64,000 nucleotides of DNA, from the IMG/VR virus record IMGVR_UViG_3300031787_007614, positions 62,001 to 126,000 of that record; one strand, 5' to 3'. The stretch's first letter is position 1. Each line of letters begins with the position of its first letter. Made by a program: the position numbers and the translations under genes. The notes beneath the pieces were generated by a model. That model saw only the letters and a list, made by a program, of their open reading frames with translations. It ran no database searches and had not been told where the DNA came from. This document shows positions 4,073 through 62,224 of this stretch, piece after piece.

Positions 4073-4849
4073 TTATTTGTGATGCTTTTGGATAGCTTCA
4101 CGAATTTCTGGGGCAATGTGTATGGGCAATTCGGTTGATATGCGAACAAACGCATCGCCCTGCTGACCTTGACGATTGGGCAGACCACGACCTTTGAGTC
4201 TTAGCAGTGTGCCCGGTTGAGTGCCCGACGGCACAGTCATAGACAATTCATTGCCTAGCAAATCTCTAACTCGAATGTCCGCACCCAATATCAAATCAAA
4301 CACATTGATTTTGCGATTGGTAATCAAGTTTAGTCCTTGCCGTTCCCAGTTTGGATCTGGTTGCACTCGATACTGCACCACTAGATCTGCGCCACCTGGG
4401 CCCAGGCCTTGGTATTGCACATTGTCTCCGTCGTCAATGCCACGCGGTACTTCAATTTCAACTGCTTGGGCACCTTGCTGTGTACCAATGGTCACTGTGC
4501 GCTGTCCACCAGTTGCAACGTCAGCAAGACTGATCCAGAGACTCATTCTCACATGACCTCTACGAGCTTGCTGTTGCGCAAAGTTCTGTCCAAACATGCT
4601 TGAAAAAATATCATTCATGTTGAAGTGTGTGCCGTTGGGGAATCCCCCAAACTGTGGGCGTGGATTGTTGTACTCAGCTCGTTTGGCTTCGTCGCCTAGA
4701 GTGTCGTAGGCTGCTTGTATCTCTTGGAACTTGGCTGTATCGCCGCCCTTGTCCGGATGATGCTGGCTGGCCAGCCGACGGAAAGCTCGTTTGATTTCGT
4801 CTTGTGTGGCAGTTCGAGCAACACCTAGTGTTGCATAGTGATCGGTCAT
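4073..4849 (-). CDS. dnaJ: DnaJ/CbpA-type J-domain co-chaperone (no Zn finger)
   Basis: J-domain with HPD (HHPDKGGD), short G/F region, DnaJ C-terminal domain (PSGTQPGTLLRLKGRGLP). Confidence 0.92.
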   Translation of the reverse strand: MTDHYATLGVARTATQDEIKRAFRRLASQHHPDKGGDTAKFQEIQAAYDTLGDEAKRAEYNNPRPQFGGFPNGTHFNMNDIFSSMFGQNFAQQQARRGHVRMSLWISLADVATGGQRTVTIGTQQGAQAVEIEVPRGIDDGDNVQYQGLGPGGADLVVQYRVQPDPNWERQGLNLITNRKINVFDLILGADIRVRDLLGNELSMTVPSGTQPGTLLRLKGRGLPNRQGQQGDAFVRISTELPIHIAPEIREAIQKHHK

Positions 4850-5754: not shown

Positions 5755-6069
5755 TTAAGTTGATAGTGTGATTGGGAATATTGTGCCAACCTTAGGCGTA
5801 TCCCAAAAAATGTCAATGTAAGTAGGACCATAGTCATCCCACTGCGTAATAGTTGCTGTGGTGCTGTCCTGAAAAGTGATTGTACTACCCACTGGATATG
5901 TGGCAATCACTGTGGCACTGTATGGTATTCCTGCGGCTTGAGGATTCCACCCTGTTACCCCACCTGTATCGCTGGTGGGAATGACCAATGGAGGCGGAGG
6001 TGGTGCGGCTCCGCTGGTTAGTTGAAGACCTGTGCCTAAAGTAATACCTGAACCTATTATCATTGCCAT
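5755..6069 (-). CDS. putative virion accessory protein (IGxGI N-terminal motif)
   Basis: MAMIIGSGITLGTG start followed by a Pro linker. Confidence 0.6.
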   Translation of the reverse strand: MAMIIGSGITLGTGLQLTSGAAPPPPPLVIPTSDTGGVTGWNPQAAGIPYSATVIATYPVGSTITFQDSTTATITQWDDYGPTYIDIFWDTPKVGTIFPITLST

Positions 6070-6072
6070 ATA

Positions 6073-6801
6073 TTAATATCCAAATCTTGTTTTGTATTGA
6101 GCGTACAAACCTTGTACGTCTCCCAGCGTTAATATTCCGTTGTAGGCCTTGACAAATCCTATGTCGCCAGTTTGCACTTCGGTGCCTGCTGAACGACTGA
6201 ATAATCTTATTTGATTGGGGCCGCCGCCGCTGCCTAGATTAGTGGCTGTAAAAGAAGTGGTAGTTGGTTGAGCACTTGTTGCTGTGTACACTTGGCCTAG
6301 GCCGGTGCTGGCGTTCCAAGTACCCCATATAAAGTTCCACACAGCATTTGTTCCTGAGCTGGGCAAGTTAACTGCATAGTTGGGATAGAATGCATTTACA
6401 AAACCATTGTAGGCACCCATCATCCAGTCTCTAGTGGCTTCACTTTGTGTGTTTAACAATCTACCAGAACTTGTGACCGACAACTTGTAGGTTGCAAACA
6501 CTGAATAACTCTGACCAGTACTCCAGTTGGGACCGCCGCGGATACTGTCAGTTCCAGTGGCGTTAGATTTTCTGAACAACCCACCATTGTCAGCTTGCCA
6601 GCTAATACTGCCGCCTGCATTGGCCACTGTTAGTGTGCGTTCTCCTGTGGTACCTGTTCCTTCTGTGACTGATCCGTTGGTGGGCACAGCTGAGTAATTG
6701 GCTGCATCTAAATCATAAATCAAACTCACTGTTGGCGCAAACCCACCACCAGCAGTGACTCCTGGTCCTATTTCAATTCCGGGTCCTATTACTATTGGCA
6801 T
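6073..6801 (-). CDS. LamG/concanavalin-A-like lectin domain virion protein
   Basis: LIYDLDAAN start; GDIGFVKAYNGILT...YAQYKTRFGY C-terminus typical of phage LamG-like domains. Confidence 0.7.
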   Translation of the reverse strand: MPIVIGPGIEIGPGVTAGGGFAPTVSLIYDLDAANYSAVPTNGSVTEGTGTTGERTLTVANAGGSISWQADNGGLFRKSNATGTDSIRGGPNWSTGQSYSVFATYKLSVTSSGRLLNTQSEATRDWMMGAYNGFVNAFYPNYAVNLPSSGTNAVWNFIWGTWNASTGLGQVYTATSAQPTTTSFTATNLGSGGGPNQIRLFSRSAGTEVQTGDIGFVKAYNGILTLGDVQGLYAQYKTRFGY

Positions 6802-6802
6802 A

Positions 6803-8350
6803 TCATGTCCTCATGCTTGTGTTACTTACTGACACTGGGCCGCTTATGTTGCCGCCGCTGGTTGTGTTAAATGCCTGATAGGCAAATCTATTGGGTCCAC
6901 CGTGCAGAATTTCTTCATTGCTGTAGTCAGTTTGCGATCCTGTGTCATACAGCATGTTGGGAGTGCTCATAGCAATGACCTTGGCTCGTATCTGTGCTGG
7001 GGTAGCTGTGGGGTAAACTTGTAGCAGTTGAGCAGCCAGGCCAGCGACATTGGGACTGGCCATTGACGTGCCTGAAATACTCATTATCAAGTAGCTGGCA
7101 TTGAATGGATATGGTGTGGTAGCACCAAATGCATTGCTGGTACTGGTGGTACTCACAATGTTTGTGCCAGGTGCATAAATATCCACCCTGGGCCCAGATT
7201 CACTAGAGCCACTTTTGTGTTCAGGATTGTCATATCCAGTGCTGACGTTGCCCACACAGATCACTCCATCAGCACTGGCCGGTGATCCGCCGCGCATGTA
7301 ATACCTAGGAGTGCTTGTTTGATAAAAAAAGTTATCGTAATCAGGGCCGCCTGGCACATCTAAAGTTTGATAGTAATTGCCGGCTGCGCCCACTAACACC
7401 ACACCTGCTGCCAGCAATTCGGCCACATCCACATCCACACTGTCTACTCTTACACCAAAGCGATTGGATGCACTGCCAATCATACCAAATGTAGCTTGTT
7501 TGGCAGACCCACTCCAGGGCGTTCCACGATAAATGCCACCATTGATACTGGTGAACGTGTTGATGTAACTCCAGCTCATGTTTACAACTGTGGGTCGTTT
7601 GTATCCTGTGGCGGGGTCCACAGTTTTGTTGTTGTGCCACCCTTTGATGCAGTCAAACACATCTGTGGTTGATATACCATTGGTGGGTGCCACGTTGAGT
7701 CCACTCACAGTCATACAGTAAATTCTAGCATTTTTAGCACGACCGTATGTTTTGCCCGCGGCAATGCCACAACAGTGTGTGCCATGTCCGTCATAGTCGG
7801 TGTAGAAATTAGCAGGCATGGTACCTGCAATACCTGACGCTGTGTACCAGTCAATTTGTTGTACTCTAGTCACGCCAGCTGCATCCGTAAACTCAGGATG
7901 GTCAACTTGCAGTCCTGAGTCTTGTACCACAAAGTCTACTCCAGTGCCGTCCAAGGGATAGTTGTAGGTCAATGTACCTGATGAACCAGGAGTGTTCATT
8001 GTGGTTGAATTCAGTCTAAACAACCCCCAATTGATTCCAAGATTGTTGGCAGGATTGGTGCCGGGACTTTTGTAATACAAGCCAGTTTGTGAGGCATTGT
8101 TGTGGATTTCAATATCTGTTCGTTGCTCAGGCGGTATCTCCACACAATACACTCTGGGGTCTTGACGCAGTTTGTCTGCTTCGTCATCAGTTAACTCATA
8201 CCAACACTGGCGTAGACTGGTGGGACGTTCATTCACAATTGCCACCCCGCGTTGGGGCACGTAGACGCTGCCTGATCCGTCAGTTTCTATTTCCTGCCAG
8301 AAAGCATCATAATCAACACCTTCATTTAATGCTACGTTATATGTGGTCAT
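6803..8350 (-). CDS. subtilisin-like S8 serine peptidase with N-terminal prodomain
   Basis: catalytic motifs VVQDSG, HGTHCCG, AAGN, GTSMASPNVAG. Confidence 0.92.
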   Translation of the reverse strand: MTTYNVALNEGVDYDAFWQEIETDGSGSVYVPQRGVAIVNERPTSLRQCWYELTDDEADKLRQDPRVYCVEIPPEQRTDIEIHNNASQTGLYYKSPGTNPANNLGINWGLFRLNSTTMNTPGSSGTLTYNYPLDGTGVDFVVQDSGLQVDHPEFTDAAGVTRVQQIDWYTASGIAGTMPANFYTDYDGHGTHCCGIAAGKTYGRAKNARIYCMTVSGLNVAPTNGISTTDVFDCIKGWHNNKTVDPATGYKRPTVVNMSWSYINTFTSINGGIYRGTPWSGSAKQATFGMIGSASNRFGVRVDSVDVDVAELLAAGVVLVGAAGNYYQTLDVPGGPDYDNFFYQTSTPRYYMRGGSPASADGVICVGNVSTGYDNPEHKSGSSESGPRVDIYAPGTNIVSTTSTSNAFGATTPYPFNASYLIMSISGTSMASPNVAGLAAQLLQVYPTATPAQIRAKVIAMSTPNMLYDTGSQTDYSNEEILHGGPNRFAYQAFNTTSGGNISGPVSVSNTSMRT

Positions 8351-8351
8351 A

Positions 8352-9098
8352 TTAAATTAAATTGGCCCAGGCACCATTTTCGTAACCCTGAAACTTGTTA
8401 GTAGATGAGTTGTAAATCATGTCACCATTGGCTGCAATTGTGTTGGCAATTTGTGCTGTGGTTAAACTAGGCAGTCGGAACGTGCCACCGCCAACTACTC
8501 TAACTGCTGACACAGCTGACAGATCCAAGTTTGTGGCTGAACTCAGTGTGGGTGTGCCTGCGCCGCCACCTATAAAGTTTGCGGCTGTTACGTTGCCAGT
8601 AACGCTGACAAAACTAAATGCATCTGCTCCAAATCCATTACCTACTAGGTTGCCGGACAAGTTGCCGCTGAGTGATGCCACTCCACCTGAAATTCCAGTC
8701 AACTGTGATCCATTGCCCACAAAGAAACTACCAATGATATTAGCGCCAGATGTGATGGTTCCTGTAGCAGAAATCAATCCTGTGGTGTTGAGGTTGCCAG
8801 CTTGTACATTACCTGTGGCACTCACTGTGGCGCCTTGTACCAGGGCCACAGACGTTACGTTGCCACCACGCACATTGCCAGTGGCCAACACGCCTGATGC
8901 TGTGTTCACGTTGCCTGTGGCTGTAACCAAGCCGCCTGTGTTCAAGTTGCCGCCTGTGATGTTGCCGGTCACAGAAGAAAAATATGTTTTCAAGTTGCTG
9001 CCTGAAATTTGATAGGTAACTCCACTGCTGACCACTGGCACAATGGCTGCATCAGTCATTGCGGCTAGTGAAGTTAGTTGTGATATTTTAATGGGCAT
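8352..9098 (-). CDS. tail-fibre-like virion protein
   Basis: IKISQL N-terminus, ATGNVxGGN repeats, GDMIYNSSTNKFQGY..GAW C-terminus. Confidence 0.75.
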   Translation of the reverse strand: MPIKISQLTSLAAMTDAAIVPVVSSGVTYQISGSNLKTYFSSVTGNITGGNLNTGGLVTATGNVNTASGVLATGNVRGGNVTSVALVQGATVSATGNVQAGNLNTTGLISATGTITSGANIIGSFFVGNGSQLTGISGGVASLSGNLSGNLVGNGFGADAFSFVSVTGNVTAANFIGGGAGTPTLSSATNLDLSAVSAVRVVGGGTFRLPSLTTAQIANTIAANGDMIYNSSTNKFQGYENGAWANLI

Positions 9099-9269: not shown

Positions 9270-9884
9270 TTAGGCTCCCAACACATGCAGTGCATGTTCA
9301 GTGTGTTTGATGCGATCCTCAAGACCAATGTAGCCACCGTTGATGGCCCGTGTTAGACCTTTTGCGTCATTGGCATCTGCAAATCTATTTAGATTGTTCT
9401 GTTCCCAGTACCAACAAGCTGACTGTGCGGCACCTTCAAAAGTGGCTAGATATTCTGCGGCTTCGGCTTCAGAAATACTCAGGCTGCCTGCAAAGAATGT
9501 GTAGTTGTCCTTGCCTGTCAACTGTATTAGCCCACGACCACAATAGCGCCAGCCATCGCCTGATGCTTCGTCGCCGTTGCCCATTCTATTGGCATAGACT
9601 CTGTTGGCAATACGTTCAGGCCGGTTGGCATACTGTGCAGCCAATTCAGCTGTGGGGAAATACTTGGGGAAAACTTTTTGTAGGCTTGCGGCTTTGTAGT
9701 TGAGATTTTCTTTGATGAAAATAAAATTTCCTGACTCATGAGCGCATTGTGCAACAAAATGTGCCACACGTAGGGGTGTGTCAATGCCGTAGTCATCTAA
9801 CAGTTGATCTAGGGCTTCGTGCCAGTGATCAATGTGGGGATTCTTTACCATTTGTTTTAGTTGTTGTACGGATAGTATGCTCAT
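9270..9884 (-). CDS. glycoside hydrolase family 19 endolysin
   Basis: FVAQCAHESG, ENLNY, YANRMGNG, GRGLIQLTG, INGG..GLEDR. Confidence 0.9.
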   Translation of the reverse strand: MSILSVQQLKQMVKNPHIDHWHEALDQLLDDYGIDTPLRVAHFVAQCAHESGNFIFIKENLNYKAASLQKVFPKYFPTAELAAQYANRPERIANRVYANRMGNGDEASGDGWRYCGRGLIQLTGKDNYTFFAGSLSISEAEAAEYLATFEGAAQSACWYWEQNNLNRFADANDAKGLTRAINGGYIGLEDRIKHTEHALHVLGA

Positions 9885-10189
9885 TTTGCACCTTCAAATA
9901 TTTTTTTCTGTACTGAGTACCACTCAATCCAAGCATCTGCTTTCACAGCACAAGCATAGTAAGTGGTGTAGTTTTGTACCACAGTTCGACCAACGTCACT
10001 GAGTCGAGCTTCACCTGGAATCTGTTCCAGTTGTGGGCACGGCACCATGGCTGATCGTCCGGGTGCATCTGGAAACTTGGCCACAACAGGCACCACAGTG
10101 CTGCACCCAGTGATGGCCAACATCAGCATCACAACAATTGCAAATATAATCAAACTGGAAACAAGTTGTTGATCCTGTTGATTTTTCAT
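9881..10189 (-). CDS. o-spanin-like lipoprotein
   Basis: lipobox AITGC, Pro-rich, CPQL and YYAC cysteines; directly upstream of the endolysin. Confidence 0.7.
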   Translation of the reverse strand: MKNQQDQQLVSSLIIFAIVVMLMLAITGCSTVVPVVAKFPDAPGRSAMVPCPQLEQIPGEARLSDVGRTVVQNYTTYYACAVKADAWIEWYSVQKKIFEGAK

Positions 10190-10190
10190 G

Positions 10191-11582
10191 TCAGCAGTTC
10201 CATTTTCTCAATGCTAGAGCCTTGCGTGTGGGTTTGCCGTTGGGTTTTTTCATTGGGCCTTTAACGCCTGACATTCTGGCGCAGAATGATTTGCGTCTTT
10301 TTGCTGCCTTAGAGCCTTTCTTTAGTTTTGAAGGCTTGGTGGTCACGGCCATTTGCAATTTTGATCCAGGATTTTCTCTACGATATGATGCCACACCTTT
10401 GGCGTTTAATCCGCCTTTTTTGCTCTTGCCTTCTTTACGTCGCCAGGCGGCTGTTTCATACAGCACATTGTCCGGCATGGCTTCAAACTGTTCCCACACT
10501 AGATCTTCGCTCACACGATTTTTCACAGCCATTTCTGCTACCAACTCTTGCATGGCTTCAAACATTTCATCCACTTCGGGATCCACTTCGTCTGACGCTT
10601 CCTCTGAATACATATAGTCCCACACAGCAACCAGCATTGACTTGGCCACAGCAATCTTTTCTTGACACCATTCAGGCAAGTTATCACCTGATTGAATTAG
10701 ATCGTCAATACCTTCTACAGCACGTTGTAGCGTTTCTAAGTTGTTGTCGGCCATGCCTGCTTCGTCGTCATACTCGCCATTGTAGTCTTCCGCTACACCT
10801 TGCTCACTAAATCGCTGACGATAACTGTTGGGATTCATTGACGATCTAGAACCAACTACAGCATTACCTTCGCCACTCAGCAACAAATCATACATGAGTT
10901 TGATTACTTTTAAAGGGCTGTTCATTCTTTCCAGGGCATTTTTAAACCATTCAACTTTTTCTGGTTTCATTGGCTTGGCACTGGGCTTGCTGATCAATGC
11001 CAGTGCCTGTGCTTTCAACGTGGACAAGTCTCTGATTTGTTCAAGACGTTTTAGATCCTCAATATCAAAGTTGTAATCAGCTTTGCCTTCCGCCACACCT
11101 TGCTGATCTTTGGGCTCGTCAAACAAGGAGTCTATGGCTTTTTTGCCGCCATACAACACAGCCAACACAATGCCAGCAGGGATGGCATATTTAAAAGCCA
11201 AAGCAGACAGGTCAAGCAATGTTTTCTCGTCAATGGCCGTGCCCACCTTGGCAGCAATATCTTTGGCAATGTCTGCCACAGAAGATCCAATTTCGTAAGC
11301 ACCAGCACCCATGCCAATTTTTCCAGCATTCTTGGCTGCAATTTCTGTGCCAGCTCGAGCAGCCTGACCTGCACCGCGAGCTCCTGCTTGTCCTGCTTGG
11401 CCAAGAACCTGTGCTATTTTTGGGGCAGCAGCCATGAACAGTCTTGCACCTGCTGCCAACAACGGCGCAAATTCATCAAGCTGTTGTTCTTTGACCATGC
11501 CGGCCTTTTTCTTTTTAGCAATAGCAATGGCTGCCTGTTGAGCAGGCGACGCTGCTTCTAGTATTACGTCATTTAGTTTCAT
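10191..11582 (-). CDS. modular internal head (ejected) protein; basic C-terminal domain resembling DUF6321
   Basis: likely start MKLNDVILE at 11582; repeated QGVAE sites; C-terminal AAWRRKEGKSKKGGLN...RRKSFCARMSG...KALALRKWNC. Confidence 0.7.
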   Translation of the reverse strand: MKLNDVILEAASPAQQAAIAIAKKKKAGMVKEQQLDEFAPLLAAGARLFMAAAPKIAQVLGQAGQAGARGAGQAARAGTEIAAKNAGKIGMGAGAYEIGSSVADIAKDIAAKVGTAIDEKTLLDLSALAFKYAIPAGIVLAVLYGGKKAIDSLFDEPKDQQGVAEGKADYNFDIEDLKRLEQIRDLSTLKAQALALISKPSAKPMKPEKVEWFKNALERMNSPLKVIKLMYDLLLSGEGNAVVGSRSSMNPNSYRQRFSEQGVAEDYNGEYDDEAGMADNNLETLQRAVEGIDDLIQSGDNLPEWCQEKIAVAKSMLVAVWDYMYSEEASDEVDPEVDEMFEAMQELVAEMAVKNRVSEDLVWEQFEAMPDNVLYETAAWRRKEGKSKKGGLNAKGVASYRRENPGSKLQMAVTTKPSKLKKGSKAAKRRKSFCARMSGVKGPMKKPNGKPTRKALALRKWNC

Positions 11583-12039
11583 TTTTTGGTGCCTCCGCTG
11601 CACGATTTATAGTGGTAATGAATTCTCGAGGAATTTCACACTGTCCACCAGGTGCAAATTTTACATCGTACTTGACTATTTCTCTGTCAATATACTGTAT
11701 GATGTCTTGACCTCTACGAGTGATGTATTCAGTTTTCTTCACAACTCGTTCCACAATCTTTACATTTTCCCGTGCGCTTTCAGCTTCAGCAATCTTTAGT
11801 TTTTGTTCCACTTCAGCCACACGCTCGCGCCATTCTGCTTCCACTGCGTATCCGCCGCGAAAGTAAACTCCTAGCACCAAAAGTGCAATGCCCAGGACTT
11901 TAAAGGGCAACTGATATTGCCACACTAGAGGAATACGATGCGCAAAAAATCCTGCTACAGTAAGCACAAGGCCCGCTAATAACAGGATGTTACAAAACCA
12001 TAAGATCAAGGCATCAGGAAGAAAATGTAAAATCCACAT
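11569..12039 (-). CDS. i-spanin-like membrane protein
   Basis: N-terminal TM helices, coiled-coil periplasmic region, C-terminal Cys (CEIP); in the lysis neighbourhood. Confidence 0.65.
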   Translation of the reverse strand: MWILHFLPDALILWFCNILLLAGLVLTVAGFFAHRIPLVWQYQLPFKVLGIALLVLGVYFRGGYAVEAEWRERVAEVEQKLKIAEAESARENVKIVERVVKKTEYITRRGQDIIQYIDREIVKYDVKFAPGGQCEIPREFITTINRAAEAPKNETK

Positions 12040-12047
12040 GCCATTAT

Positions 12048-12251
12048 TTAGTTGCGCCCCCAGGATACCCGAGCCCAGGCCCGTTCATGCAACCAATACA
12101 GCACAGTATTCACACCCATTTGCACAAATGCAATGACCGAGCTAATTCCAAAACTACCAGTAATTAAATACGCAATGGTAAATGTGCTGGCGCTGCCAGT
12201 AATGCGCCAGGTCAGAGTTTTTACTAGACTACGACCATTGCTGTCGGTCAC
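12048..12251 (-). CDS. DUF2061-like small membrane protein
   Basis: RSLVKTLTWR...YWLHERAW motif. Confidence 0.8.
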   Translation of the reverse strand: MTDSNGRSLVKTLTWRITGSASTFTIAYLITGSFGISSVIAFVQMGVNTVLYWLHERAWARVSWGRN

Positions 12252-29277: not shown

Positions 29278-32200
29278 TTAAGCTATTTGGTCCCAAGCAG
29301 ACCCGGTCCATAATCTCAAAGCGCCAAAGCTGGTACTGTAATAAAGTTGGCCTGTAACAGGGCTTGCTGGATCGCTAGACGCAACGGGTATAATCATTCT
29401 GGATGTGGCCTGTACATTTCCACCGGTGACATTCCCAGCACTTGTCTCACCTGTGACACTTAGGCTAGTCAGTGTTCCTACAGAAGTAATATTGGGTTGT
29501 GCCGCAGTGGTCACTGTACCAGCAGTGGTAGCAGAAGTAGCAGAAGTAGCAGTGGTAGCAGATGACGCACTGGCTGCAAAAATAGCATTGGCTACTGATC
29601 CAGTAACATTAGCACCAGGAATGAAAGACAAGCCAGCGCCTGAGCCAATGAATAGAGCTGCCACTACGTTAGCAGAGGCTGAAATAGTAGTACCACTGAT
29701 TACATTGGCGCCGGTGATATTACCAGTAGCGCCTGTGGTAACAAATCCGCCACCAGTGACATTACCAGTAACGGATAAATTGGCCAATGTGCCTAATTGT
29801 GTGATGTTGGTCTGTATTGATGTAGTTAGTAATCCGCTGACCTGGGTTGCTGAAACATTATTGGCAATCACATTTCCTAACGCTGACAAGTTGCCAGATG
29901 CTGAAACACTACCGCCGGTGACAATATTGGCACCATTGATGTTGCCAGTCACTAGCAAATTATTGGTTATTTTATTAAATTGCAATCCAGATGTGGCATT
30001 GGCTGTGTTGTTGTCATTGAACAGCACAAACGTATTACCGCCAGGTGCTGTCAAATTACCTGTGACGGTAGTAGCTATAATATTACCCACAAACAACGGT
30101 GCAATAACATTGGCAGCAGCAGAAATCTGACCAGTAGCGGTGTAATTGCCACCACTGATGTTTGCAGCTGAAGTAATGTTTCCAGTAGCAGTGACCAATC
30201 CCACAGTGGTTACATTACCACCAATCACGTTGCCTGTAGAGCTAAACACGCCAGATGAATACATGCTACCACCTGTAACAATGTTGCCACCAATCACGTT
30301 GCCTGTACTTGATACTACCCCGCCGGTGTTTATGTTGCCGCCGGTGACGTTACCTGTGGATGTGATTAGTCCACCTGTGGTTAAGTTTCCACCAATCACA
30401 TTGGCTGTCACGCTGACAGTTGTGCCAGTGTGATTTGTAGCAGAAATATTTCCGCCAATGATGTTACCGGTAGCCGTGATCAACCCAGCAGTTCGTATGT
30501 TTCCTCCAGTTACGTTGCCTGTGCCAGAAATAGCGCCAGCAGCTTGCACATCACCTGTGGCGCTGACTGTGCCCTGTGCGTCAATGTTGCCCACAACTAA
30601 ATTTCCATAGTTGTTGACAGTAACAACTTCACTGGCAATAGTAACTTGAACTGCGGCAATCAATTTGTCTGCAGAATTGTCGTAACCAATAAATGCTGAT
30701 CTTTCAGCTGTGGTAAAATACCAAAGTTGTTCACCACGGTCCTTACCATCATTGGTTACCAATGGTTGATTGTTTGCAGCTCTACCAATACCAATGATTG
30801 GATCCTCAACTGCTAGAGTGGTAACATTGGTATATTCTGTGTCGCCTGACACAGTTAGGTTACCAGCAATTACTGCGTCACCGCCCACAATAAGACCCGC
30901 CGAAGTCACAACATTGGCACCATTTACATTGCCTGCGGTAGAAATATTGCCGCCAATTATGTTACCACTTATGGTAAACACATTGGAAGTCTTGTCAAAA
31001 GTCATTCCAGCACTGGCGTTGGCCAAACCATTATCATTAAAAAGAACTTGTGTGTTTGATCCAGCAACTGAAAGATTTCCAGATATGTTACCAACCACAT
31101 TGCCAATGAAATTTGGAGCAGTTATGTTACCGCTTGCTGTTACAGTTCCACCAGTAAGCAAGTTGCCACCAGTGATATTGCTCACTGCACTCAACGTGGA
31201 TCCTACCACCACACTGTTCACAATGTTTGCAGATCCCAACCCAATTATGTTGTTACCAGTGACGTCGCCTGTGGCACTAACTTGACCAGCTGTTCTTAAA
31301 TTACCGCCTGTGACGTTGCCACTTGCGGATATAATAGTGCTGGTGATGTTGTTGGTTGAGCTGATGTTGTTGCCAGTTACGTTGGCATTGGCAACTATAT
31401 TGGCGCCAGTTATGTCTCCGCTGGCAGTGATTGTGCCACCAACAGATATCAATCCAACAGTAACAAAGTTGGCGCCAATGATGTTACCTGTTGCTGATAC
31501 AGTTGCACTGGTTGACAAGTTGTTACTGGTAATATTTCCTGATCCACCAAGCGCATTGCTTACCACCAATGAATTTAAATCACCAAGCGTGGTCAAACTT
31601 GAGTTGATCACGTTAGCACTGAGTGTGGTTCCTGTAAGCAACGCAGCATTTGAACTAACGCTGATGCCTGTTAATTGACTGCCGTTACCAATGACGTATG
31701 CACCTGTAACGTTGCCTGCGGCACTGATTGTGCCAGTGGCCAACACACTACCTGACAAAATTGCACTGTCACCTATTAAATTGCCAGATGCATTCACAAT
31801 ACCAGTGTTTATGTTTTGTGAAATAATATTGCCAGATGAAGAAACTACTCCAGCTGTGGTTAGGTTCCCGCCAACCACATTTCCAGTAGCAGTGAGATTG
31901 GCCAGTGTGCCAACTGTGGTAAAACTGGCCGAAGTTACGTTGGCACTGAGTACATTTCCAGTCAATAATGCTGCATTGGCCTGGCTAACCACACCAGTAA
32001 GTTGACTGCCGTTACCAATATAAAATCCGCCGGCGCTGATGTTGCCAGTGGCACTGATTGCTGAGTTTGCTAATAATGTGCCTTTTACTGTGGCACCTGT
32101 GCCCGAAACAACCAGCACGTTTGCAACGTTGGCTGCACTCACACTAACTGTTGAATTTTCAACAATTTGAATGTTTGAAGTACCGTTAGCAATGCCCGAA

Positions 32201-32319
32201 ATACCACCAATATTGTAGAGTTCTGTAAAATTGTCATTGACAATTGTGAACGCTGTTCTCAGTGGTGATCCGGTGCCGTCGTTGGCAGTATTGCCAGTAT
32301 CAATAAATTGTTGTGCCAT
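29278..32319 (-). CDS. long tail-fibre-like protein
   Basis: N-terminal TGNTANDGTGSPLRTAF..NDNFTELY baseplate-attachment motif; extensive SATGNVxGGN repeats. Confidence 0.8.
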   Translation of the reverse strand: MAQQFIDTGNTANDGTGSPLRTAFTIVNDNFTELYNIGGISGIANGTSNIQIVENSTVSVSAANVANVLVVSGTGATVKGTLLANSAISATGNISAGGFYIGNGSQLTGVVSQANAALLTGNVLSANVTSASFTTVGTLANLTATGNVVGGNLTTAGVVSSSGNIISQNINTGIVNASGNLIGDSAILSGSVLATGTISAAGNVTGAYVIGNGSQLTGISVSSNAALLTGTTLSANVINSSLTTLGDLNSLVVSNALGGSGNITSNNLSTSATVSATGNIIGANFVTVGLISVGGTITASGDITGANIVANANVTGNNISSTNNITSTIISASGNVTGGNLRTAGQVSATGDVTGNNIIGLGSANIVNSVVVGSTLSAVSNITGGNLLTGGTVTASGNITAPNFIGNVVGNISGNLSVAGSNTQVLFNDNGLANASAGMTFDKTSNVFTISGNIIGGNISTAGNVNGANVVTSAGLIVGGDAVIAGNLTVSGDTEYTNVTTLAVEDPIIGIGRAANNQPLVTNDGKDRGEQLWYFTTAERSAFIGYDNSADKLIAAVQVTIASEVVTVNNYGNLVVGNIDAQGTVSATGDVQAAGAISGTGNVTGGNIRTAGLITATGNIIGGNISATNHTGTTVSVTANVIGGNLTTGGLITSTGNVTGGNINTGGVVSSTGNVIGGNIVTGGSMYSSGVFSSTGNVIGGNVTTVGLVTATGNITSAANISGGNYTATGQISAAANVIAPLFVGNIIATTVTGNLTAPGGNTFVLFNDNNTANATSGLQFNKITNNLLVTGNINGANIVTGGSVSASGNLSALGNVIANNVSATQVSGLLTTSIQTNITQLGTLANLSVTGNVTGGGFVTTGATGNITGANVISGTTISASANVVAALFIGSGAGLSFIPGANVTGSVANAIFAASASSATTATSATSATTAGTVTTAAQPNITSVGTLTSLSVTGETSAGNVTGGNVQATSRMIIPVASSDPASPVTGQLYYSTSFGALRLWTGSAWDQIA

Positions 32320-32337
32320 AATCCAGTCCTAGTAAGC

Positions 32338-32369
32338 TATTTACCAAAACTCTGTGCACCGCTAAATAC
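32338..32369. promoter_or_regulatory. divergent late-type promoters (TAAATA on both strands)
   Basis: TATTTA at ~32338 and TAAATA at ~32364, between divergently transcribed structural genes. Confidence 0.55.
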
Positions 32370-32387
32370 ACCAGCTCGGAGTAAACA

Positions 32388-34655
32388 ATGTCATATATCA
32401 TCAATAACAGCAGAGGACAAACAATTGCTGTGGTCCCAGACGGCACTATTAACACCACTAGCACTAGTTTGAATCTAGTAGGTCGTGCTGTGTCTAGTTA
32501 TGGCACGGCAGAAAACGAAAACTATGTGTTTTTGTTGGAAAACTTTGCCAATGATACTGGACCATTGCAACCAATTTTAGGACAACTTTGGTACAATTCC
32601 AGTACTGATGTTATTTCTGTATACAGTTCTGGCAATACTTTCACTGCATTGGCCAGCCAAGATTATGTGCAAGCTCAAAAAATCAGTCCTGCTTTTACTG
32701 GAGTTCCCACAGCACCCACAGCCGCTGCCGGCACAGCCAACACACAATTAGCAACCACTGCATTTGTTTCCAACAGTCCACAATTAAGTGGCGTGCCCAC
32801 TGCTCCTACTGCTGCGGCTGGCACAGCAACCACACAGATTGCAACCACAGCATTTGTTTCCAACAGTCCACAATTGAGTGGTGTGCCCACAGCACCCACT
32901 GCCTCATCGGGTACAGCAACCACACAGATTGCAACCACAGCATTTGTAACTGCTGGACCAGCCTTTGCAGGCATACCCACTGCACCAACACCAGCAAATG
33001 TGTCTAACAACACTCAATTGGCTACCACTGAGTTTGTGCAAAATCAAAAAGACAGTCCAGCGTTGGTTGGGATTCCCACTGCGCCTACCGCAGCCGCTGG
33101 AACCAACACTTCGCAGTTGGCCACTACTGCTTTTGTTCAAGGCGAAAAAGTAAGTCCAGCATTTTTGGGAGTGCCCACAGCACCAACCGCAGTGGTAGGC
33201 ACAGCCAACACTCAATTGGCCACCACTGGGTTTGTTTACAGTGTAACTGGTAACTTGGGAACAGCCAGTCAGCAAAATGCCAACGCTATTGCAATCACTG
33301 GTGGAACAATAACAGGTATCACTCCACTGGCTATTATTGATGGCGGCACCGGCGGAAACACTGCTGCCACAGCTAGATCCAGTTTAGGACTTGGATCAGT
33401 ATCACAACAAGATGCCAACGCAGTTGCAATTTCAGGTGGCGAGATAACTGGCATTATTGACTTGGCAGTGGCCGATGGCGGCACTGGGGCAAGTACCGCA
33501 GCTGGCGCCAGAACCAATTTGGGACTAGGAACAATATCCACACAAAATTCCACTGCTGTAAACATCACAGGTGGTACAATTACAGGCATCACTCCATTGG
33601 CCATAAGTGCAGGTGGTACTGGGGGATTCGACGTTGTTTCTGCTAGAGACAATCTTGGACTTGGTACTATTGCTATTCAGCAGTCCAATGCAGTTGCAAT
33701 CACTGGTGGTGCAATTGAAGGTGTAACCATACAAAGTTTAGCAACACCATTGCCTATTGCCAGCGGCGGAACTGGTGCAACCAGTAATGTTAATGCTCGA
33801 ATTAATCTGGGTCTTAACAGCATGGCCACACAGGCTTCTGACAATGTCACTATTACTGGTGGTCAAATAAGCGGTATCAGTGCTATTGCAATTGTATCTG
33901 GCGGAACTGGCGCAACCACTGAGGTGCAAGCCAGAACCAATTTGGGCCTTGGTACCATGGCCACTCAAAATTCGTCAAACATCACCATCACTGGCGGTAC
34001 CATCACAGGCATCACTCCGTTGTCAATTGCACAAGGTGGCACCGGTGCATCAGACTCGGCCGGCGCTAGAAGTAATTTGGGATTGGAAACTGGTGCTACC
34101 ACAAACGTAGGCACCATGGCCACTCAAAATGCCAATGCAGTAACTATTGAAGGCGGTTCTATTACTGGTATCACTCCATTGACAATTCCCAATGGCGGTA
34201 CCGGAGCGTCCACAGCAGGCAATGCTAGAGCAGCTCTTGGCATTCCTGATTTCCCACTGTCTCTTCTAAATGGTGGTACAGGTGCCACCACTGCGGCCGG
34301 TGCAAGAACTGCATTGCAGTTAGAGTCTGGCGCTACTACTACAGTAGGGACAATGGCCACTCAAAATGCCAATAGTGTGGCCATCACTGGCGGCTACATA
34401 ACTACATTGACTGCACCAATACCTATCGAATCTGGTGGAACAAATGGAGCCACAGCAGCAGCCGCAAGAACAAGTCTAGGGGTTCCTCCATTAACTAGAG
34501 CTATCAATACAGGCAATGGGCTGGCTGGAGGCGGCAACTTGGCATCTGATCTCACACTCAGTATTGCAACAAACAGCAATGGCTATGGTGTAAGATACAT
34601 TTCGTTTGATCTTCCAACTGGTGGTAATGACGGCGACGTTTGGTATCAAATTTAA
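32388..34655 (+). CDS. tail fibre protein with two repeat blocks
   Basis: LLENFA...GQLWY N-terminus; about 7 SPAFxGVPTAPTAAAGTxxTQLATTAFV repeats; about 9 GGTGAxxAxxARxNLGL repeats; GNDGDVWYQ end. Confidence 0.85.
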   Translation: MSYIINNSRGQTIAVVPDGTINTTSTSLNLVGRAVSSYGTAENENYVFLLENFANDTGPLQPILGQLWYNSSTDVISVYSSGNTFTALASQDYVQAQKISPAFTGVPTAPTAAAGTANTQLATTAFVSNSPQLSGVPTAPTAAAGTATTQIATTAFVSNSPQLSGVPTAPTASSGTATTQIATTAFVTAGPAFAGIPTAPTPANVSNNTQLATTEFVQNQKDSPALVGIPTAPTAAAGTNTSQLATTAFVQGEKVSPAFLGVPTAPTAVVGTANTQLATTGFVYSVTGNLGTASQQNANAIAITGGTITGITPLAIIDGGTGGNTAATARSSLGLGSVSQQDANAVAISGGEITGIIDLAVADGGTGASTAAGARTNLGLGTISTQNSTAVNITGGTITGITPLAISAGGTGGFDVVSARDNLGLGTIAIQQSNAVAITGGAIEGVTIQSLATPLPIASGGTGATSNVNARINLGLNSMATQASDNVTITGGQISGISAIAIVSGGTGATTEVQARTNLGLGTMATQNSSNITITGGTITGITPLSIAQGGTGASDSAGARSNLGLETGATTNVGTMATQNANAVTIEGGSITGITPLTIPNGGTGASTAGNARAALGIPDFPLSLLNGGTGATTAAGARTALQLESGATTTVGTMATQNANSVAITGGYITTLTAPIPIESGGTNGATAAAARTSLGVPPLTRAINTGNGLAGGGNLASDLTLSIATNSNGYGVRYISFDLPTGGNDGDVWYQI
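32753..32947 (+). repeat. near-identical 90-bp tandem repeat within the tail fibre gene
   Basis: gcatttgtttccaacagtccacaatt and acagcaaccacacagattgcaaccacagcatttgt each recur at a 90-bp period. Confidence 0.8.
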
Positions 34656-34658
34656 TAT

Positions 34659-36866
34659 ATGGCAGAAGTAATAAGAGAAGCAGGGTACACTGGGTTTGTC
34701 CAGAGATTGACCTGGGTGCATGGCAACGCTGTGCCTGTGACTGCATACTTGTGGGGCGGTGGTGGTGCAGGCGGCGCTAGGGCGCCAACTGGGTCATTTA
34801 CAACCAGTTATCAAGGCGATATTCAGCAGGATCCTTGGTTTGGTCCACTGATACCAAATAAATCTGGTTATTATGAACTTGGTTATAACGTTTTTAACGA
34901 AGGACCAGAAACCTATTACCCAATAGCATGGGTTGTGGTAATAAATGGAATTATAGTTTATGGTTCTCCAGTTCCGCCACCGCCACCTGCACCAAATCCA
35001 GCCAGACTTAATAATCCACCACCCACAATCCTGGCTAACCCAACAACGTTTCAAGGCGTAACAATATACACACAAAATGGAGTACAGTCTCCGTATTTTG
35101 TGAAAGTTTACGATTTTGATTATACCACGTACACAAGTGGCGCAGCAGTAGGCGGCACCGGCGGCGGCGGTGCGTATGCACAGGTTAATTTTACCATCAA
35201 CGAAGGTGACATACTTGATGTTGCAGTAGGACAAGGTGGTGGTGCCGGCGGCGTCACTGCATTGGCCTCTGGAATAACACCAGGCGGCGAAGCTGGTGCT
35301 GGTTTACTTACATCGAGTCTTTTTAACACTGTTACTAACACTGCCTCCCCACCTGTTTATCGTGAATTCAGTCCGACCTACTGCACATTTTTAAACAATT
35401 ACGGAGTTTGGGTAGACCCGCCTTCGGCATCAGTGTTTGACAGAACATATACCGTGGCATTTCCGTCGACTGGCAACTATCAATTTACCATATGCTCTAA
35501 TGGACGAGCAGATTTTTATGTAGATGGTGAATTTGCGGCATTCAGTTATGATCCACAAATTCCCTGGACTGTGGGAGTTATTGTTACAGCTGGCAATAGA
35601 ACTATTAGAATAGTGTCAACTGCTGCTACCGGCAAACGAGGCGCCGTTGCATTAGTTATTGGATCTGGTGTTAATTATGCCGGTGCCCGGGGCGGTGATG
35701 GAATAGCAGGTGGTGGCGGAGCCGGGGGTGGCGGCGGCGCTACAATAATTTTAAAGAATGATGTGATAATTGGTGCAGCCGGTGGCGGAGGCGGAGGCGG
35801 AGCTGGTGGTATCACCAGTGCAGGTGCTAGTGCTCCGGGCGCACGCGGTCAGAATGCCGCAGGATTTTTTGCTGGTCAAAATGGCACCAGCAGAGTGTAT
35901 TATAATGGCGGTGGCTGCGGCGGAGGCGGTGGCGGCATCACAGGTGGCCGTGGTGGTGCATCCCCAGGTGCAGGCGGCGACGGCGGCACATCAGGATCAT
36001 TTGGTGGCAGCACTGGAATTGAAGTGCAAAATCCTTCGGGTAGAACTCCTGGTGGCACAACCAACATTTATTATCGAGCAGGTGTTGCATTAGGTGGACA
36101 GTCTCAAGCCGTTGTTGGCAATCTTGAAGGAAATGGCAGAAACGGCTATGCGGTATTTGTGTTTGAAGTGCCGGACATACATGTAAAAACTGCTGGCACA
36201 TGGAATCCAGTGACCAAAACTTTTGTAAAATATACTGGACTATGGCGCTTGGCTAAGAAAAAATTTATAAAAATAAACGGCGAATGGGTACCAACAATTG
36301 CATCAACCAGTCCGGTGTTTGCAAATTATCTTGGCCTTGGAACAAATCCATTGCCAGCAGATTTTGAAGAATTACCACCACCTCCTCCACCAAGTGGCGG
36401 CGGAGATGGGTATGGCGGTTGGGACGGTGGTGGAGGAGGTGGTGGTGGCAAAGTGATCTGTACAGCACTGTACGAACTTGGCTACATGGAAAAAGAAATA
36501 TTTGAATACGACCAAGCCTATGGTTTATGGTTGTATCAAAATGATTTTGTGTCTTATCGTGGCTACAGAGCCTGGGCTGATGTACTTGTACAATATGTCA
36601 AAGGGCAAGGTCGACCCATGTTGCCTAAATTGTTATTCTGGAAAACCGCTGATGAACAACAACGATTGAGTCAGCAGTTGGCCATATCACTAGCACGAGT
36701 CATCGGTGGCGCATTCTCTAAAGAAATTGCTCGACGTGCTGGGCACAACATTCCATTCAGCATTGGAGGATGGGCATGTGTGACTGTGGGTCTTGCAGTT
36801 AACAAAGCCATTGGTTATATTGTAAAGAAAATTAAAAAGACCAGTACTATTGATTACAAGGAATAA
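34659..36866 (+). CDS. Gly-rich tail fibre / receptor-binding protein with C-terminal KVICT domain
   Basis: YLWGGGGAGG and GGGGAY Gly-rich domain, central beta domain, poly-G linker, then KVICTAL...GYRAWA, a hydrophobic helix and a basic tail. Confidence 0.75.
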   Translation: MAEVIREAGYTGFVQRLTWVHGNAVPVTAYLWGGGGAGGARAPTGSFTTSYQGDIQQDPWFGPLIPNKSGYYELGYNVFNEGPETYYPIAWVVVINGIIVYGSPVPPPPPAPNPARLNNPPPTILANPTTFQGVTIYTQNGVQSPYFVKVYDFDYTTYTSGAAVGGTGGGGAYAQVNFTINEGDILDVAVGQGGGAGGVTALASGITPGGEAGAGLLTSSLFNTVTNTASPPVYREFSPTYCTFLNNYGVWVDPPSASVFDRTYTVAFPSTGNYQFTICSNGRADFYVDGEFAAFSYDPQIPWTVGVIVTAGNRTIRIVSTAATGKRGAVALVIGSGVNYAGARGGDGIAGGGGAGGGGGATIILKNDVIIGAAGGGGGGGAGGITSAGASAPGARGQNAAGFFAGQNGTSRVYYNGGGCGGGGGGITGGRGGASPGAGGDGGTSGSFGGSTGIEVQNPSGRTPGGTTNIYYRAGVALGGQSQAVVGNLEGNGRNGYAVFVFEVPDIHVKTAGTWNPVTKTFVKYTGLWRLAKKKFIKINGEWVPTIASTSPVFANYLGLGTNPLPADFEELPPPPPPSGGGDGYGGWDGGGGGGGGKVICTALYELGYMEKEIFEYDQAYGLWLYQNDFVSYRGYRAWADVLVQYVKGQGRPMLPKLLFWKTADEQQRLSQQLAISLARVIGGAFSKEIARRAGHNIPFSIGGWACVTVGLAVNKAIGYIVKKIKKTSTIDYKE

Positions 36867-49540: not shown

Positions 49541-49600
49541 TTGAACTCCTTTTTGCTTAACATGTCCATATTATAGCATTTTGGCAATTATTGGTCAACC
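49541..49600 (-). repeat. early promoter/RBS repeat element
   Basis: GGTTGACCAATAATTGCCAAAATGCTATAAT...AAAAAGGAG. Confidence 0.8.
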
Positions 49601-50085: not shown

Positions 50086-50091
50086 TTTGGA

Positions 50092-50148
50092 CTCCTTTGT
50101 GTTAACTAGTCTCTATTATAGCAAATTGGGATTTTTTGGTCAACCAAA
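50092..50148 (-). repeat. early promoter/RBS repeat (57 bp, 1 mismatch to 50421-50477)
   Basis: direct sequence comparison. Confidence 0.9.
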
Positions 50149-50415: not shown

Positions 50416-50420
50416 CTTGG

Positions 50421-50654: not shown

Positions 50655-50659
50655 TTGCG

Positions 50660-62218: not shown

Positions 62219-62224
62219 ACCTTA

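Follow-up and report, generated by a model that had tools for sequence, protein, structure and literature searches.

A repeated QGVAE linker, a possible prohead protease site, marks points of module exchange in a putative head cargo protein of a freshwater jumbo phage

A repeat-bounded module inside a lysis-like operon

We analyzed a 64,000-nt window (positions 62,001 to 126,000 of IMG/VR record IMGVR_UViG_3300031787_007614; the whole genome is 364 kb). At positions 10191 to 11582 of the window, the minus strand carries a gene for a 463-aa protein. The open reading frame called mechanically reaches 11603 from a GTG. The likely true start is the ATG at 11582, since a GGAGG lies 9 nt upstream of it and two 463-aa homologues from our set (P0002 and P0003) start at the same residue, with MKLNDV. 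The gene and its surroundings are organized as follows:

10191..11582 (−), gene for the 463-aa modular protein
11556..11582 (−), residues 1 to 9, MKLNDVILE, a capsid-targeting-like leader ending in I-L-E
11472..11555 (−), residues 10 to 37, a small basic "PAQQAAIAIAKKK" module ending in QLDE
11088..11471 (−), residues 38 to 165, a Gly/Ala-rich N-module with one strongly hydrophobic stretch (about residues 122 to 144), ending in the first QGVAE
11087..11104 (−), repeat copy 1 and linker 1 (QGVAE, residues 161 to 165; codons at 11088 to 11102)
10788..11087 (−), residues 166 to 265, a predicted 100-aa four-helix module including its C-terminal linker
10787..10804 (−), repeat copy 2 and linker 2 (QGVAE, residues 261 to 265; codons at 10788 to 10802)
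10455..10787 (−), residues 266 to 376, the acidic helical part of the constant C-module (pI 4.1), ending in VLYE
10194..10454 (−), residues 377 to 463, a very basic DUF6321 domain (pI 11.8)
11569..12039 (−), upstream neighbor, 156 aa, with transmembrane segments plus a coiled coil, i-spanin-like; its 3′ end overlaps the start of the gene by 14 nt
9881..10189 (−), downstream neighbor, 102 aa, a lipoprotein with lipobox LAITGC, o-spanin-like, starting 1 nt after the stop of the gene
9270..9884 (−), endolysin-like gene, 204 aa (phrog_181 "endolysin," E = 7e-77)

The initial annotation had reported 17-bp direct repeats at 10788 and 11088, exactly 300 bp apart, both encoding QGVAE and flanking a self-contained helical domain, and this observation is confirmed. 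The match in fact extends by one base: CTTCCGCTACACCTTGCT at 10787 to 10804 and CTTCCGCCACACCTTGCT at 11087 to 11104 are 17/18 identical with a spacing of exactly 300 nt. On the minus strand, both copies read CAA GGT GT(G/A) GCG GAA. The further x-x-E sites that it had listed are also present: VILE at residues 6 to 9, QLDE at 34 to 37, and VLYE at 373 to 376.

To check whether the repeat could have arisen by chance, we counted 18-mers with at most one mismatch within 1.5 kb; 0.1 are expected per 64-kb Markov-1 random window. The 16-mer CAAGGTGTRGCGGAAG occurs four times in the genome, always in frame as QGVAE, against 0.0002 expected. While one 5-aa repeat in a protein of about 470 aa is not extremely rare on its own, 135 unique motif contexts were found across homologues. 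The idea of a chance match without functional meaning is effectively refuted by these numbers and by the breakpoints described below. A remnant of a simple tandem duplication can be rejected as well: BLASTP and MAFFT comparison of the sequences that follow the two repeats revealed no significant similarity beyond QGVAE and a nearby DYN.

The enclosed 100 aa are predicted to fold as a four-helix unit. The AF2 model of this module (m5949b9f6909b, pLDDT 71) has pLDDT of 76 to 91 for the first 73 residues, followed by a low-confidence tail leading into the second linker. The full-length model was poor (pLDDT 49.8, pTM 0.23) and was used only for linker disorder and helix positions; in it, both QGVAE copies lie in coil or low-confidence stretches, and the N-module also has low pLDDT.

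The DUF6321 domain (Pfam PF19846) was identified with 77.7 bits against a cut-off of 28.5 (residues 392 to 468 of the open reading frame, full profile 1 to 72). It covers about a fifth of the protein and is the only copy in the genome. No paper in the literature searched mentions DUF6321, and we found no description of the linker.

The location of the gene raises the possibility that its product is an accessory of the lysis cassette, for example, a membrane-acting or holin/antiholin-like factor with a variable periplasmic or cytoplasmic part. The gene is translationally coupled between the i-spanin-like and lipoprotein genes with the endolysin next in line, synteny with these genes is conserved in relatives, and the N-module has one hydrophobic 19- to 23-residue stretch (Kyte-Doolittle maximum 1.9). 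However, the protein itself has no lysis-family hit in the Pfam and PHROG scans, the spanin hits of the neighbors are weak (E = 1e-4 to 1e-6), and the hydrophobic module is replaced by unrelated soluble modules at the same locus in homologue P0020. T4 also places ipIII and ipII beside its lysozyme gene. Together with the leaders and the head-gene neighborhoods of DUF6321 considered below, these results make a lysis role unlikely.

Homologues gain, lose, and exchange modules at the linker

The initial annotation had named colinear homologues without modular indels as an outcome that would speak against module swapping at QGVAE. To test this, we collected homologues by a word search, which gave 6221 hits of 268 to 726 aa among the 8000 candidates scored. 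Most share only the C-terminal ~200 aa, at 90 to 96% identity; for the acidic part of the C-module, this level of identity holds in most of the 120 listed homologues. In 121 homologues, the motif G-[V/M/I]-A-E recurs up to five times per protein (the broader G[VIM][AST]E occurs zero to five times) and sits directly before the constant module. Splitting at the motif yielded about 69 module families in shuffled architectures, such as 1-4-0, 1-14-0, 1-0, 1-15-0, 1-12-0, 30-4-10-0, 13-1-0, 2-6-0, and 3-6-0, where numbers denote module families. The 100-aa module (family 4) was found in 17 of 121 homologues in differing contexts. The N-module (family 1) is replaced by other modules in P0020 and P0027 to P0033. 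The small basic module ends in QGVAE instead of QLDE in P0038 and P0041, and elsewhere it follows GVAE. Homologues are thus not colinear.

Ends of BLAST alignments (HSPs) between homologues lie within 6 aa of a motif in 30% of cases, against 6% for random positions. The strict motif explains alignment ends only in part because many joints use degenerate versions (VTE, VSAE, AVPE, and MPE).

At the nucleotide level, we compared three syntenic loci of related phages (L089, L091, and L092; about 88 to 94% identity in the flanks). Five of six breakpoints fall exactly on the two repeats: at 11087, 11087, 11090, and 11096 in copy 1 against L089, L091, and L092, and at 10793 in copy 2 against L091. 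A breakpoint against L092 lies near 11500, in the small basic module. Lake-metagenome contigs, compared with a 2301-nt query, diverge at 10790, and summed contig depth drops between the bins ending at 10800 and starting at 10801. Two joints compatible with a deletion between the repeats (10810 to 11087 and 10772 to 11110) were seen in one contig each, with short sides of 22 to 30 nt at 85% likeness, and are too weak to claim an in-population deletion.

Synonymous sites of the motif are also conserved. The Ala codon is the rare GCG in 6 of 7 motif copies at 54 to 74 kb of this genome, against 7% of Ala codons genome-wide (binomial 8e-7), and in 10 of 23 unique motifs from other contigs, against 5% (6e-8), although these counts are not phylogenetically independent. 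Val is encoded only by GTG or GTA in 13 of 13 motifs. Such conservation is expected for a recombination joint; a rare GCG codon could alternatively act as a translational pause at domain borders.

Possible processing by a T4-type prohead protease

The initial annotation interpreted the protein as an internal head polyprotein cut by the head protease into separate ejected effectors, with the DNA of the cleavage site doubling as a joint for swapping domains. This interpretation is partly supported: the recombination joint is well supported, while cleavage and packaging are plausible but inferred from sequence alone.

Several lines of indirect evidence suggest processing in the head. The genome encodes a T4 gp21-type protease (Peptidase_S77, PF03420, 83.9 bits, above its cut-off, at genome positions 262533 to 263171). 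In T4, gp21 cuts after L/I-x-E, and a 10-aa capsid-targeting sequence (CTS) directs internal proteins into the head (PMC9026906). The capsid protein is 29% identical to T4 gp23 (E = 2e-43) and is closest to those of Rak2/PA5oct-type phages. It has KVILE followed by N, with the possible cut between E and N, five residues before the point that aligns with T4 residue 74; the T4 cut after E65 is nine residues before that point. A megablast search of the capsid gene against E. coli genomes returned no match and has no bearing on this question.

The leader MKLNDVILE, followed by A, resembles MKTYQEFIAE, also followed by A, of T4 IPII and IPIII. DUF6321 genes in 80 viral loci start with MKINEIITE, MKSHEFITE, MRATEFITE, and similar peptides, and CTS-like N termini occur across 66 distinct DUF6321 genes with the pattern M-[KR]-x-x-[DE]-[FIV]-[IL]-x-E, the similarity being one of pattern and not of a statistical model. 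The 100-aa module also exists as stand-alone genes: P0129 (MRLFELFEE plus module) and P0130 (MRIHEIVES plus module) end within a few residues of where the linker would begin, and P0131 carries a longer leader region. A stand-alone 81-aa DUF6321 version lies between the scaffold and capsid genes of pelagiphage HTVC031P, and in cyanophage S-RIM8 DUF6321 lies next to neck and terminase genes. Among isolate phages, a DNA search found only the DUF6321 part, in pelagiphages, and tblastn found only the C-terminal part, in cyanophages and pelagiphages.

Before the constant module, P1 is Glu in 45 of 47 unique junctions and P3 is V, M, I, or L in 43 of 47, behind many different upstream sequences. On the other hand, P3 is mostly V or M rather than the L/I documented for T4, and the P1 Glu could be retained simply because its codon is part of the conserved joint (GAAG). 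Some junctions carry M-P-D instead of Glu, so not every joint could be cut. The gene lies about 190 kb from the head gene cluster. DUF6321 also occurs in T7-like pelagiphages, which are not known to encode a prohead protease, so the domain itself does not require cleavage.

We consider the following explanation the most likely, with a probability of roughly 0.6. The gene would encode a cassette-built cargo protein of a freshwater Rak2/PA5oct-like jumbo phage, in which a T4-type capsid-targeting leader is followed by a string of independently folding small modules and a constant acidic-plus-basic (DUF6321) module, joined by a short unstructured linker with the consensus [K/D]-[Q/K/E]-Q-G-[V/M]-A-E followed by G, D, or A. 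Our analysis shows that related phages have inserted, deleted, and exchanged modules at this linker and that its DNA (CAA GGT GTR GCG GAA G) is conserved beyond what the amino acids require; it therefore acts as a short in-frame homology patch for recombination. What remains inference is that the linker, together with I-L-E at residue 9, L-D-E at 37, and L-Y-E at 376, is an aliphatic-x-Glu cleavage site for the gp21-type protease. In this view, the precursor is taken into the prohead core through its leader and cut into roughly 10- to 16-kDa pieces that stay in the head with the DNA (the DUF6321 piece has a pI of about 12) and enter the host with it. The rapid turnover of modules suggests host-interaction or counter-defense roles.

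The modularity and breakpoint data fit equally well an uncleaved multidomain protein that acts as one chain, packaged or not, in which QGVAE is only a flexible interdomain linker whose conserved DNA provides homology for exchange. Some polyvalent proteins are packaged without processing (PMC5512222), and the M-P-D junctions show that Glu is dispensable in some variants. Yet P1 Glu and an aliphatic P3 persist even where the linker DNA is otherwise unrelated (VTE and VSAE in L089 and L091; AVPE, NLPE, and KVDE elsewhere), the leader ends in the same kind of site, stand-alone module genes begin and end at the linker positions, and the genome has the matching protease. We therefore regard this alternative as less likely, though it remains the strongest rival. 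Cleavage by another protease, whether a host enzyme, self-cleavage, or the S8 subtilase encoded about 2 kb downstream (6803 to 8350; Pfam E = 8e-31), is very unlikely. A 1389-aa protein of the neighboring region does carry an HExxH motif, but cleavage after Glu with an aliphatic P3 is the documented rule for gp21-type enzymes (PMC9026906). It is not a typical subtilase preference, and the subtilase gene sits among fiber-like genes.

A broader possibility, which we regard as tentative and somewhat less likely than not, is that freshwater T4-type and jumbo phages share a community-wide cargo cassette system. A roughly 16-nt sequence encoding the prohead protease site Q-G-V/M-A-E would act as a universal in-frame splice joint, so that any small module from a large shared pool could be recombined behind one capsid-targeting leader, loaded into the head as a polyprotein, released there by the protease, and delivered into the host. 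One short element would then serve as both a protein processing and a DNA recombination signal, generating thousands of effector combinations.

Relation to known systems and module content

Like T4 internal proteins IPI, IPII, and IPIII and Alt, the protein has a leader of about 10 residues ending in aliphatic-x-Glu, a gp21-family protease in the genome, highly variable cargo behind a conserved leader (PMC3012670, PMC9026906), a basic, DNA-compatible component, and a gene next to a lysozyme-type gene. T4 internal proteins are single-module genes with one N-terminal cut, and Alt has two; here, several unrelated modules are concatenated behind one leader and separated by a repeated, nucleotide-conserved linker. 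Pfam and PHROG scans returned no internal-protein family, but T4 internal proteins are themselves unrelated to each other apart from the CTS (PMC3012670).

Inner-body and ejection proteins of phiKZ-like and SPN3US giant phages are likewise head cargo processed at several Glu sites by a gp21-related protease, gp175/gp245, at S/A-x-E (PMC9026906). The protein studied here does not fit their S/A/G-x-E motif, and the protease matches the T4 S77 model directly. In phiKZ, the cuts appear mostly to remove propeptides rather than to separate exchangeable modules.

Polyvalent proteins of phages and conjugative elements combine 2 to 15 distinct domains in mosaic architectures, with predicted packaging and delivery into the host and sometimes proteolytic processing (PMC5512222). 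The 3 to 5 modules found here match this architecture, and the 1389-aa protein mentioned above, a classical-looking polyvalent protein (NTase + HExxH + amidoligase) with one EGVAE, lies 12 kb away in this genome. However, our modules are very small (40 to 260 aa), none is a recognized conflict or effector domain (such as MPTase, ART, ParB-like, methylase, or helicase), and a uniform linker that doubles as a protease-type site is not a described feature of that class.

Short conserved sequences that delimit hypervariable segments and supply homology for swapping them are found in T4-type gp38 adhesins (glycine-rich motifs; PMC3157838) and PeSL cassettes (PMC2839356). The VENN and PxxxxDPxGL boundaries of CdiA and Rhs polymorphic toxins act similarly, and in Rhs the boundary motif is also a cleavage site. 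The protein class and biology differ, and the joint described here is about 16 nt long. In contrast to the polymorphic toxins, the constant part is C-terminal, the variable parts are N-terminal or internal, and the flanking genes are conserved lysis-type genes, with no immunity gene present.

No function could be assigned to the modules. A Pfam search found only DUF6321 in this protein and gave nothing for the 100-aa module or for ten other module segments. For the 100-aa module, the ESM Atlas gave scores of 0.81 or less and weak AraC-HTH-like structural rows at a TM of about 0.55, Foldseek against PDB gave a best E of 0.5, and Foldseek against BFVD found only uncharacterized 79- to 85-aa phage proteins (TM 0.56 to 0.74, E 0.04 to 0.3).

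Proteins that phages carry in the head and inject with their DNA are among the first weapons used against host defenses, yet outside T4 and phiKZ-like phages they are hard to recognize. The locus suggests a simple sequence rule for finding such cargo in uncultured aquatic phages: a leader, repeated aliphatic-x-Glu linkers, and a basic DUF6321 tail. It also shows one way in which cargo of this kind can diversify quickly, by exchange of whole modules at a tiny joint conserved at both the protein and the DNA level. If cleavage is confirmed, DUF6321 and several tens of unnamed module families would gain a cellular location and a role, and the linker could become a practical tool for loading several foreign proteins into T4-type capsids from one construct. 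The family is abundant, as seen from the word search above, and lake metagenomes from 14 studies hold this gene.

A repeated in-frame joint in a minus-strand gene

The window covers bases 62001–126000 of a 364,404-bp virus record with direct terminal repeats. The capsid protein encoded by this virus is 62–66% identical to those of Vibrio phage 2.275.O, Pseudomonas phage PA5oct, and other Rak2-like jumbo myoviruses and 29% identical to T4 gp23. The gene considered here is found in lake and other freshwater metagenomes from 14 studies. It lies on the minus strand, where the mechanical ORF occupies positions 10191–11603. The real start is almost certainly the ATG at 11582, since a GGAGG is located 9 nt upstream and homologues start with MKLNDV. 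The resulting protein contains 463 residues, and this numbering is used below.

The two direct repeats were found exactly where the initial annotation had placed them, and the match extends to 18 nt (10787–10804 and 11087–11104, 17/18 identical, with a spacing of 300 nt); the observation itself is confirmed. Both copies read CAA GGT GTR GCG GAA, which encodes QGVAE (residues 161–165 and 261–265). A repeat of this kind is expected 0.1 times per random window of this composition. The 16-mer CAAGGTGTRGCGGAAG occurs four times in the genome, compared to 0.0002 expected, and is in frame as QGVAE each time; two copies are in this gene, and two are in a 611-aa gene located 17–18 kb away, outside the window. 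The sequences that follow the two repeats are not related beyond QGVAE and a nearby DYN. This is therefore a repeated joint rather than a duplicated domain.

The window contains 24 further 18-nt direct repeats with at most one mismatch within 1.5 kb (30215–35235, 49583–50698, 59081–59168, and 61971–62528). Those at 30–35 kb lie in the 1013-, 755-, and 735-aa genes, probably as repeated domains, while the others may be intergenic cassettes.

A Pfam search of the protein revealed only DUF6321 at the C terminus. Judging from composition and comparison with relatives, the chain is organized as follows:

Residues 1–9: leader MKLNDVILE
Residues 10–37: small basic "PAQQAAIAIAKKK" piece ending in QLDE
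Residues 38–165: Gly/Ala-rich module with one hydrophobic stretch, ending in QGVAE
Residues 166–265: the 100-aa module, ending in QGVAE
Residues 266–376: acidic helical segment (pI 4.1), ending in VLYE
Residues 377–463: DUF6321 (pI 11.8)

The AF2 model of the whole chain is poor (pLDDT 49.8) but places both QGVAE copies in coil or low-confidence stretches. When the 100-aa module was modeled alone, AF2 predicted four helices with pLDDT 76–91, followed by a floppy tail that runs into the second linker. The description of this segment in the initial annotation as a self-contained helical domain holds up at the level of the predicted structure.

Module exchange at the QGVAE joint

To determine how the joint behaves in relatives, we performed a word search, which returned 6221 hits among the 8000 candidates scored. 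The listed hits are 268 to 726 aa long, and most of them share only the last ~200 residues, at 90–96% identity. In the 120 sequences returned, G-[V/I/M]-[A/S/T]-E recurs up to five times per protein and sits immediately before the constant C-module. The consensus over 135 unique contexts is [K/D]-[Q/K/E]-Q-G-[V/M]-A-E followed by G, D, or A. Cutting every protein at the motif and clustering the resulting pieces yielded 69 module families with freely shuffled architectures.

Architectures of this protein and of selected homologues (P numbers), given as successive module families separated by slashes
This protein: 1/4/0
P0004: 1/14/0
P0010: 1/0
P0009: 1/15/0
P0013: 1/12/0
P0008: 1/23/4/0
P0027–P0030: x/4/10/0, with different N-terminal pieces (x)
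P0034: 13/1/0
P0044: 2/6/0
P0067: 3/6/0

The 100-aa module (family 4) occurs in 17 proteins, in unrelated surroundings. It is about 90% or more identical to the copy in the window and is exactly 100 residues long wherever it is bounded by the strict motif on both sides. Ends of BLAST alignments (HSPs) between homologues fell within 6 residues of a motif five times more often than random positions did (30% compared to 6%). The remainder is explained by degenerate joints such as VTE, VSAE, AVPE, and MPE.

The clearest evidence was obtained at the nucleotide level. We compared the window to three viral contigs (L089, L091, and L092) that carry the same flanking genes (kinase, DUF2061, a 146- to 156-aa or 88-aa gene, this gene, and then genes of 102, 204, and 53 aa) and are about 88–94% identical to the window on both sides. 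In the comparison with L091, identity stops at 11087 and resumes at 10793, so that the 100-aa module is replaced by a 64-aa one, with both breakpoints located on the two repeats. In the comparison with L089, a 76-aa module is inserted between 11087 and 11090. In the comparison with L092, the N-module is replaced between about 11500 and 11096. The alignments show identity running up to, or starting from, the ...GCGGAAG of the motif.

In lake metagenomes, contigs matching the C-module diverge from this sequence at 10790 (10 contigs in three runs, going to several different sequences), and summed contig depth drops severalfold between the bins ending at 10800 and starting at 10801. Single low-depth metagenome contigs (run X18; window 10772–11110) join 10810 to 11087 and 10772 to 11110, roughly removing the 100-aa module. 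The flanks are too short to be trusted, although this is what a deletion between the repeats would look like. Colinear homologues without modular indels, which had been named beforehand as the outcome that would contradict the proposed module exchange, are not what the data show.

The DNA of the joint is conserved beyond the requirements of the protein. Within this genome, the motif copies at 54–74 kb use GCG for Ala in 6 of 7 cases, although GCG makes up 7% of Ala codons (binomial 8e-7). In 23 unique motif contexts from other viral contigs, GCG is used 10 times against a 5% background (6e-8), Val is always GTG or GTA, Gly is GGT 18 times, and Glu is always GAA. Two allelic forms are visible, GGT GTR GCG GAA and GGC ATG GCG GAA. 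Since these counts are not phylogenetically independent, the P values overstate the case; the direction of the effect is nevertheless clear. It is what continual recombination through a short homology patch would produce, although a rare-codon pause at domain borders is an alternative contribution.

Inferred head location and cleavage by the head protease

The interpretation in the initial annotation, an internal head polyprotein cut by the head protease at sites whose DNA doubles as a recombination joint, is partly supported. The gain, loss, and swapping of modules at the QGVAE joint are shown by the comparisons presented above and can be regarded as nearly certain. In contrast, presence of the protein in the head and its cleavage by the head protease are inferred from sequence rather than from proteomic data. 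This mechanism is the best explanation but is unproven, and we estimate a probability of about 0.6 for the overall statement.

Several lines of evidence support this inference. The genome encodes a gp21-type prohead protease (Peptidase_S77, 83.9 bits, above its cutoff) in a T4-like head gene block about 190 kb away. T4 gp21 cuts after L/I-X-E, the first 10 residues of IPIII are sufficient to target proteins into the head, and positions 8 and 10 govern processing (PMC9026906). The leader MKLNDVILE resembles MKTYQEFIAE of T4, and across 66 distinct DUF6321 genes from viral contigs, the N termini are of the form MKINEIITE, MKSHEFITE, MRATEFITE, MRSKEFITE, and similar. Two adjacent small genes elsewhere in this genome (129 and 123 aa; C1:218097–218854 of the genome, equal to L086:14097–14854 in our segment numbering, minus strand) begin with MRAREFITE and MRAQEFIAE, nearly the T4 IPII/IPIII leader, and are likely classical single-module internal proteins.

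At 47 unique junctions preceding the constant module, P1 is Glu in 45 and P3 is V/M/I/L in 43, behind many different upstream sequences. The same small module follows either the ILE of the leader or an internal GVAE in different proteins. The 100-aa module also exists as stand-alone genes: P0129 (MRLFELFEE and then the module) and P0130 (MRIHEIVES and then the module) consist of a leader plus the module and stop within a few residues of where the linker would begin, while P0131 has a longer leader region. Leader cleavage and linker cleavage would therefore give nearly the same mature product. The capsid protein has KVILE followed by N five residues before the position that aligns with T4 residue 74; the T4 cut after E65 is nine residues before it.

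In other phages, DUF6321 genes sit among head genes. In Pelagibacter phage HTVC031P (L088:2897–3142), DUF6321 is an 81-aa stand-alone gene between the scaffold and capsid genes. In Synechococcus phage S-RIM8 (L087:2110–3681), where the gene lies beside neck and small-terminase genes, DUF6321 ends a 523-aa chain of small basic Cys-containing modules that also occur in proteins of the phage studied here.

Other features argue against this view. P3 is V or M rather than L or I, the Glu codon is itself part of the conserved joint, a few junctions have Asp in place of Glu, and DUF6321 also occurs in T7-like phages. In addition, the gene is translationally coupled within a tight late operon (window 9270–12251) that looks like a lysis cassette, in which starts and stops overlap or abut:

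12048–12251: DUF2061 membrane protein
11569–12039: gene with transmembrane segments plus coiled coil, i-spanin-like, overlapping the start of the modular gene
10191–11582, minus strand: the modular gene
9881–10189: lipobox lipoprotein gene, 1 nt after the stop of the modular gene
9270–9884: 204-aa endolysin-like gene, phrog_181

The weight of this last argument is reduced by the situation in T4, where ipIII and ipII lie directly beside the lysozyme gene e, and by the fact that the hydrophobic N-module is exchanged for unrelated modules at the same locus.

In function, the closest models are T4 internal proteins with their capsid targeting sequence (CTS) and gp21 processing (PMC3012670, PMC9026906), the multiply cleaved head cargo of phiKZ-like phages (PMC9026906), and the polyvalent proteins of Iyer et al. 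(PMC5512222). In evolutionary mechanism, the closest models are the motif-bounded swapping in gp38 adhesins (PMC3157838) and PeSL cassettes (PMC2839356). The VENN and DPxGL boundaries of CdiA and Rhs toxins are also comparable. Membership is established only for DUF6321. The protein has the features of a T4-type internal protein that can be read from sequence, while the defining ones, presence in the head and cleavage, remain inferred. It lacks the recognized effector domain of polyvalent proteins and does not have the architecture of polymorphic toxins. What appears to be new is the combination of several unrelated small modules behind one leader, separated by a uniform linker that is both a protease-type site and a nucleotide-conserved recombination joint. 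We found no description of such a combination, and no paper in the library searched mentions DUF6321.

Other genes with the same joint and neighboring loci

The joint is also present in other genes of this phage. The 611-aa protein (C1:54027–55862 of the genome, equal to L002:4027–5862, minus strand) has QGVAE twice plus QGMAE and KGMAE and a CTS-like start, MIIDDLFE. It shares an N-terminal module and a DnaJ-like CxxC zinc-ribbon module with homologues of the present protein in other phages; the zinc-ribbon module is found inserted at the first QGVAE of homologues P0009 and P0041. Next to it, a 1389-aa polyvalent-looking protein (C1:56219–60388, equal to L002:6219–10388, minus strand) contains a nucleotidyltransferase, an HExxH metallopeptidase-like motif, Amidoligase_2, a basic C-terminal tail, and one EGVAE. 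It is flanked by small basic proteins of 117 and 118 aa with MRYKEILE and MRAYEF starts. An 878-aa protein at 205 kb has EQGMAE twice.

More distant DUF6321 proteins from viral contigs (L083, L034, L045, and L069) carry the same linker many times, with seven copies in L083 (609 aa) and four in L034 (658 aa). The joint is therefore used well beyond this phage lineage and is a property of a set of genes and of a phage community, not of this gene alone.

Elsewhere in the window, a 515-aa subtilase (6803–8350; Peptidase_S8, E = 8e-31) sits among Gly/Thr-rich, fiber-like genes of 104, 242, and 248 aa (5755–9098). A 258-aa protein encoded at 4073–4849 has an N-terminal J-domain signature (HPDK), that is, a phage-encoded DnaJ-like co-chaperone.
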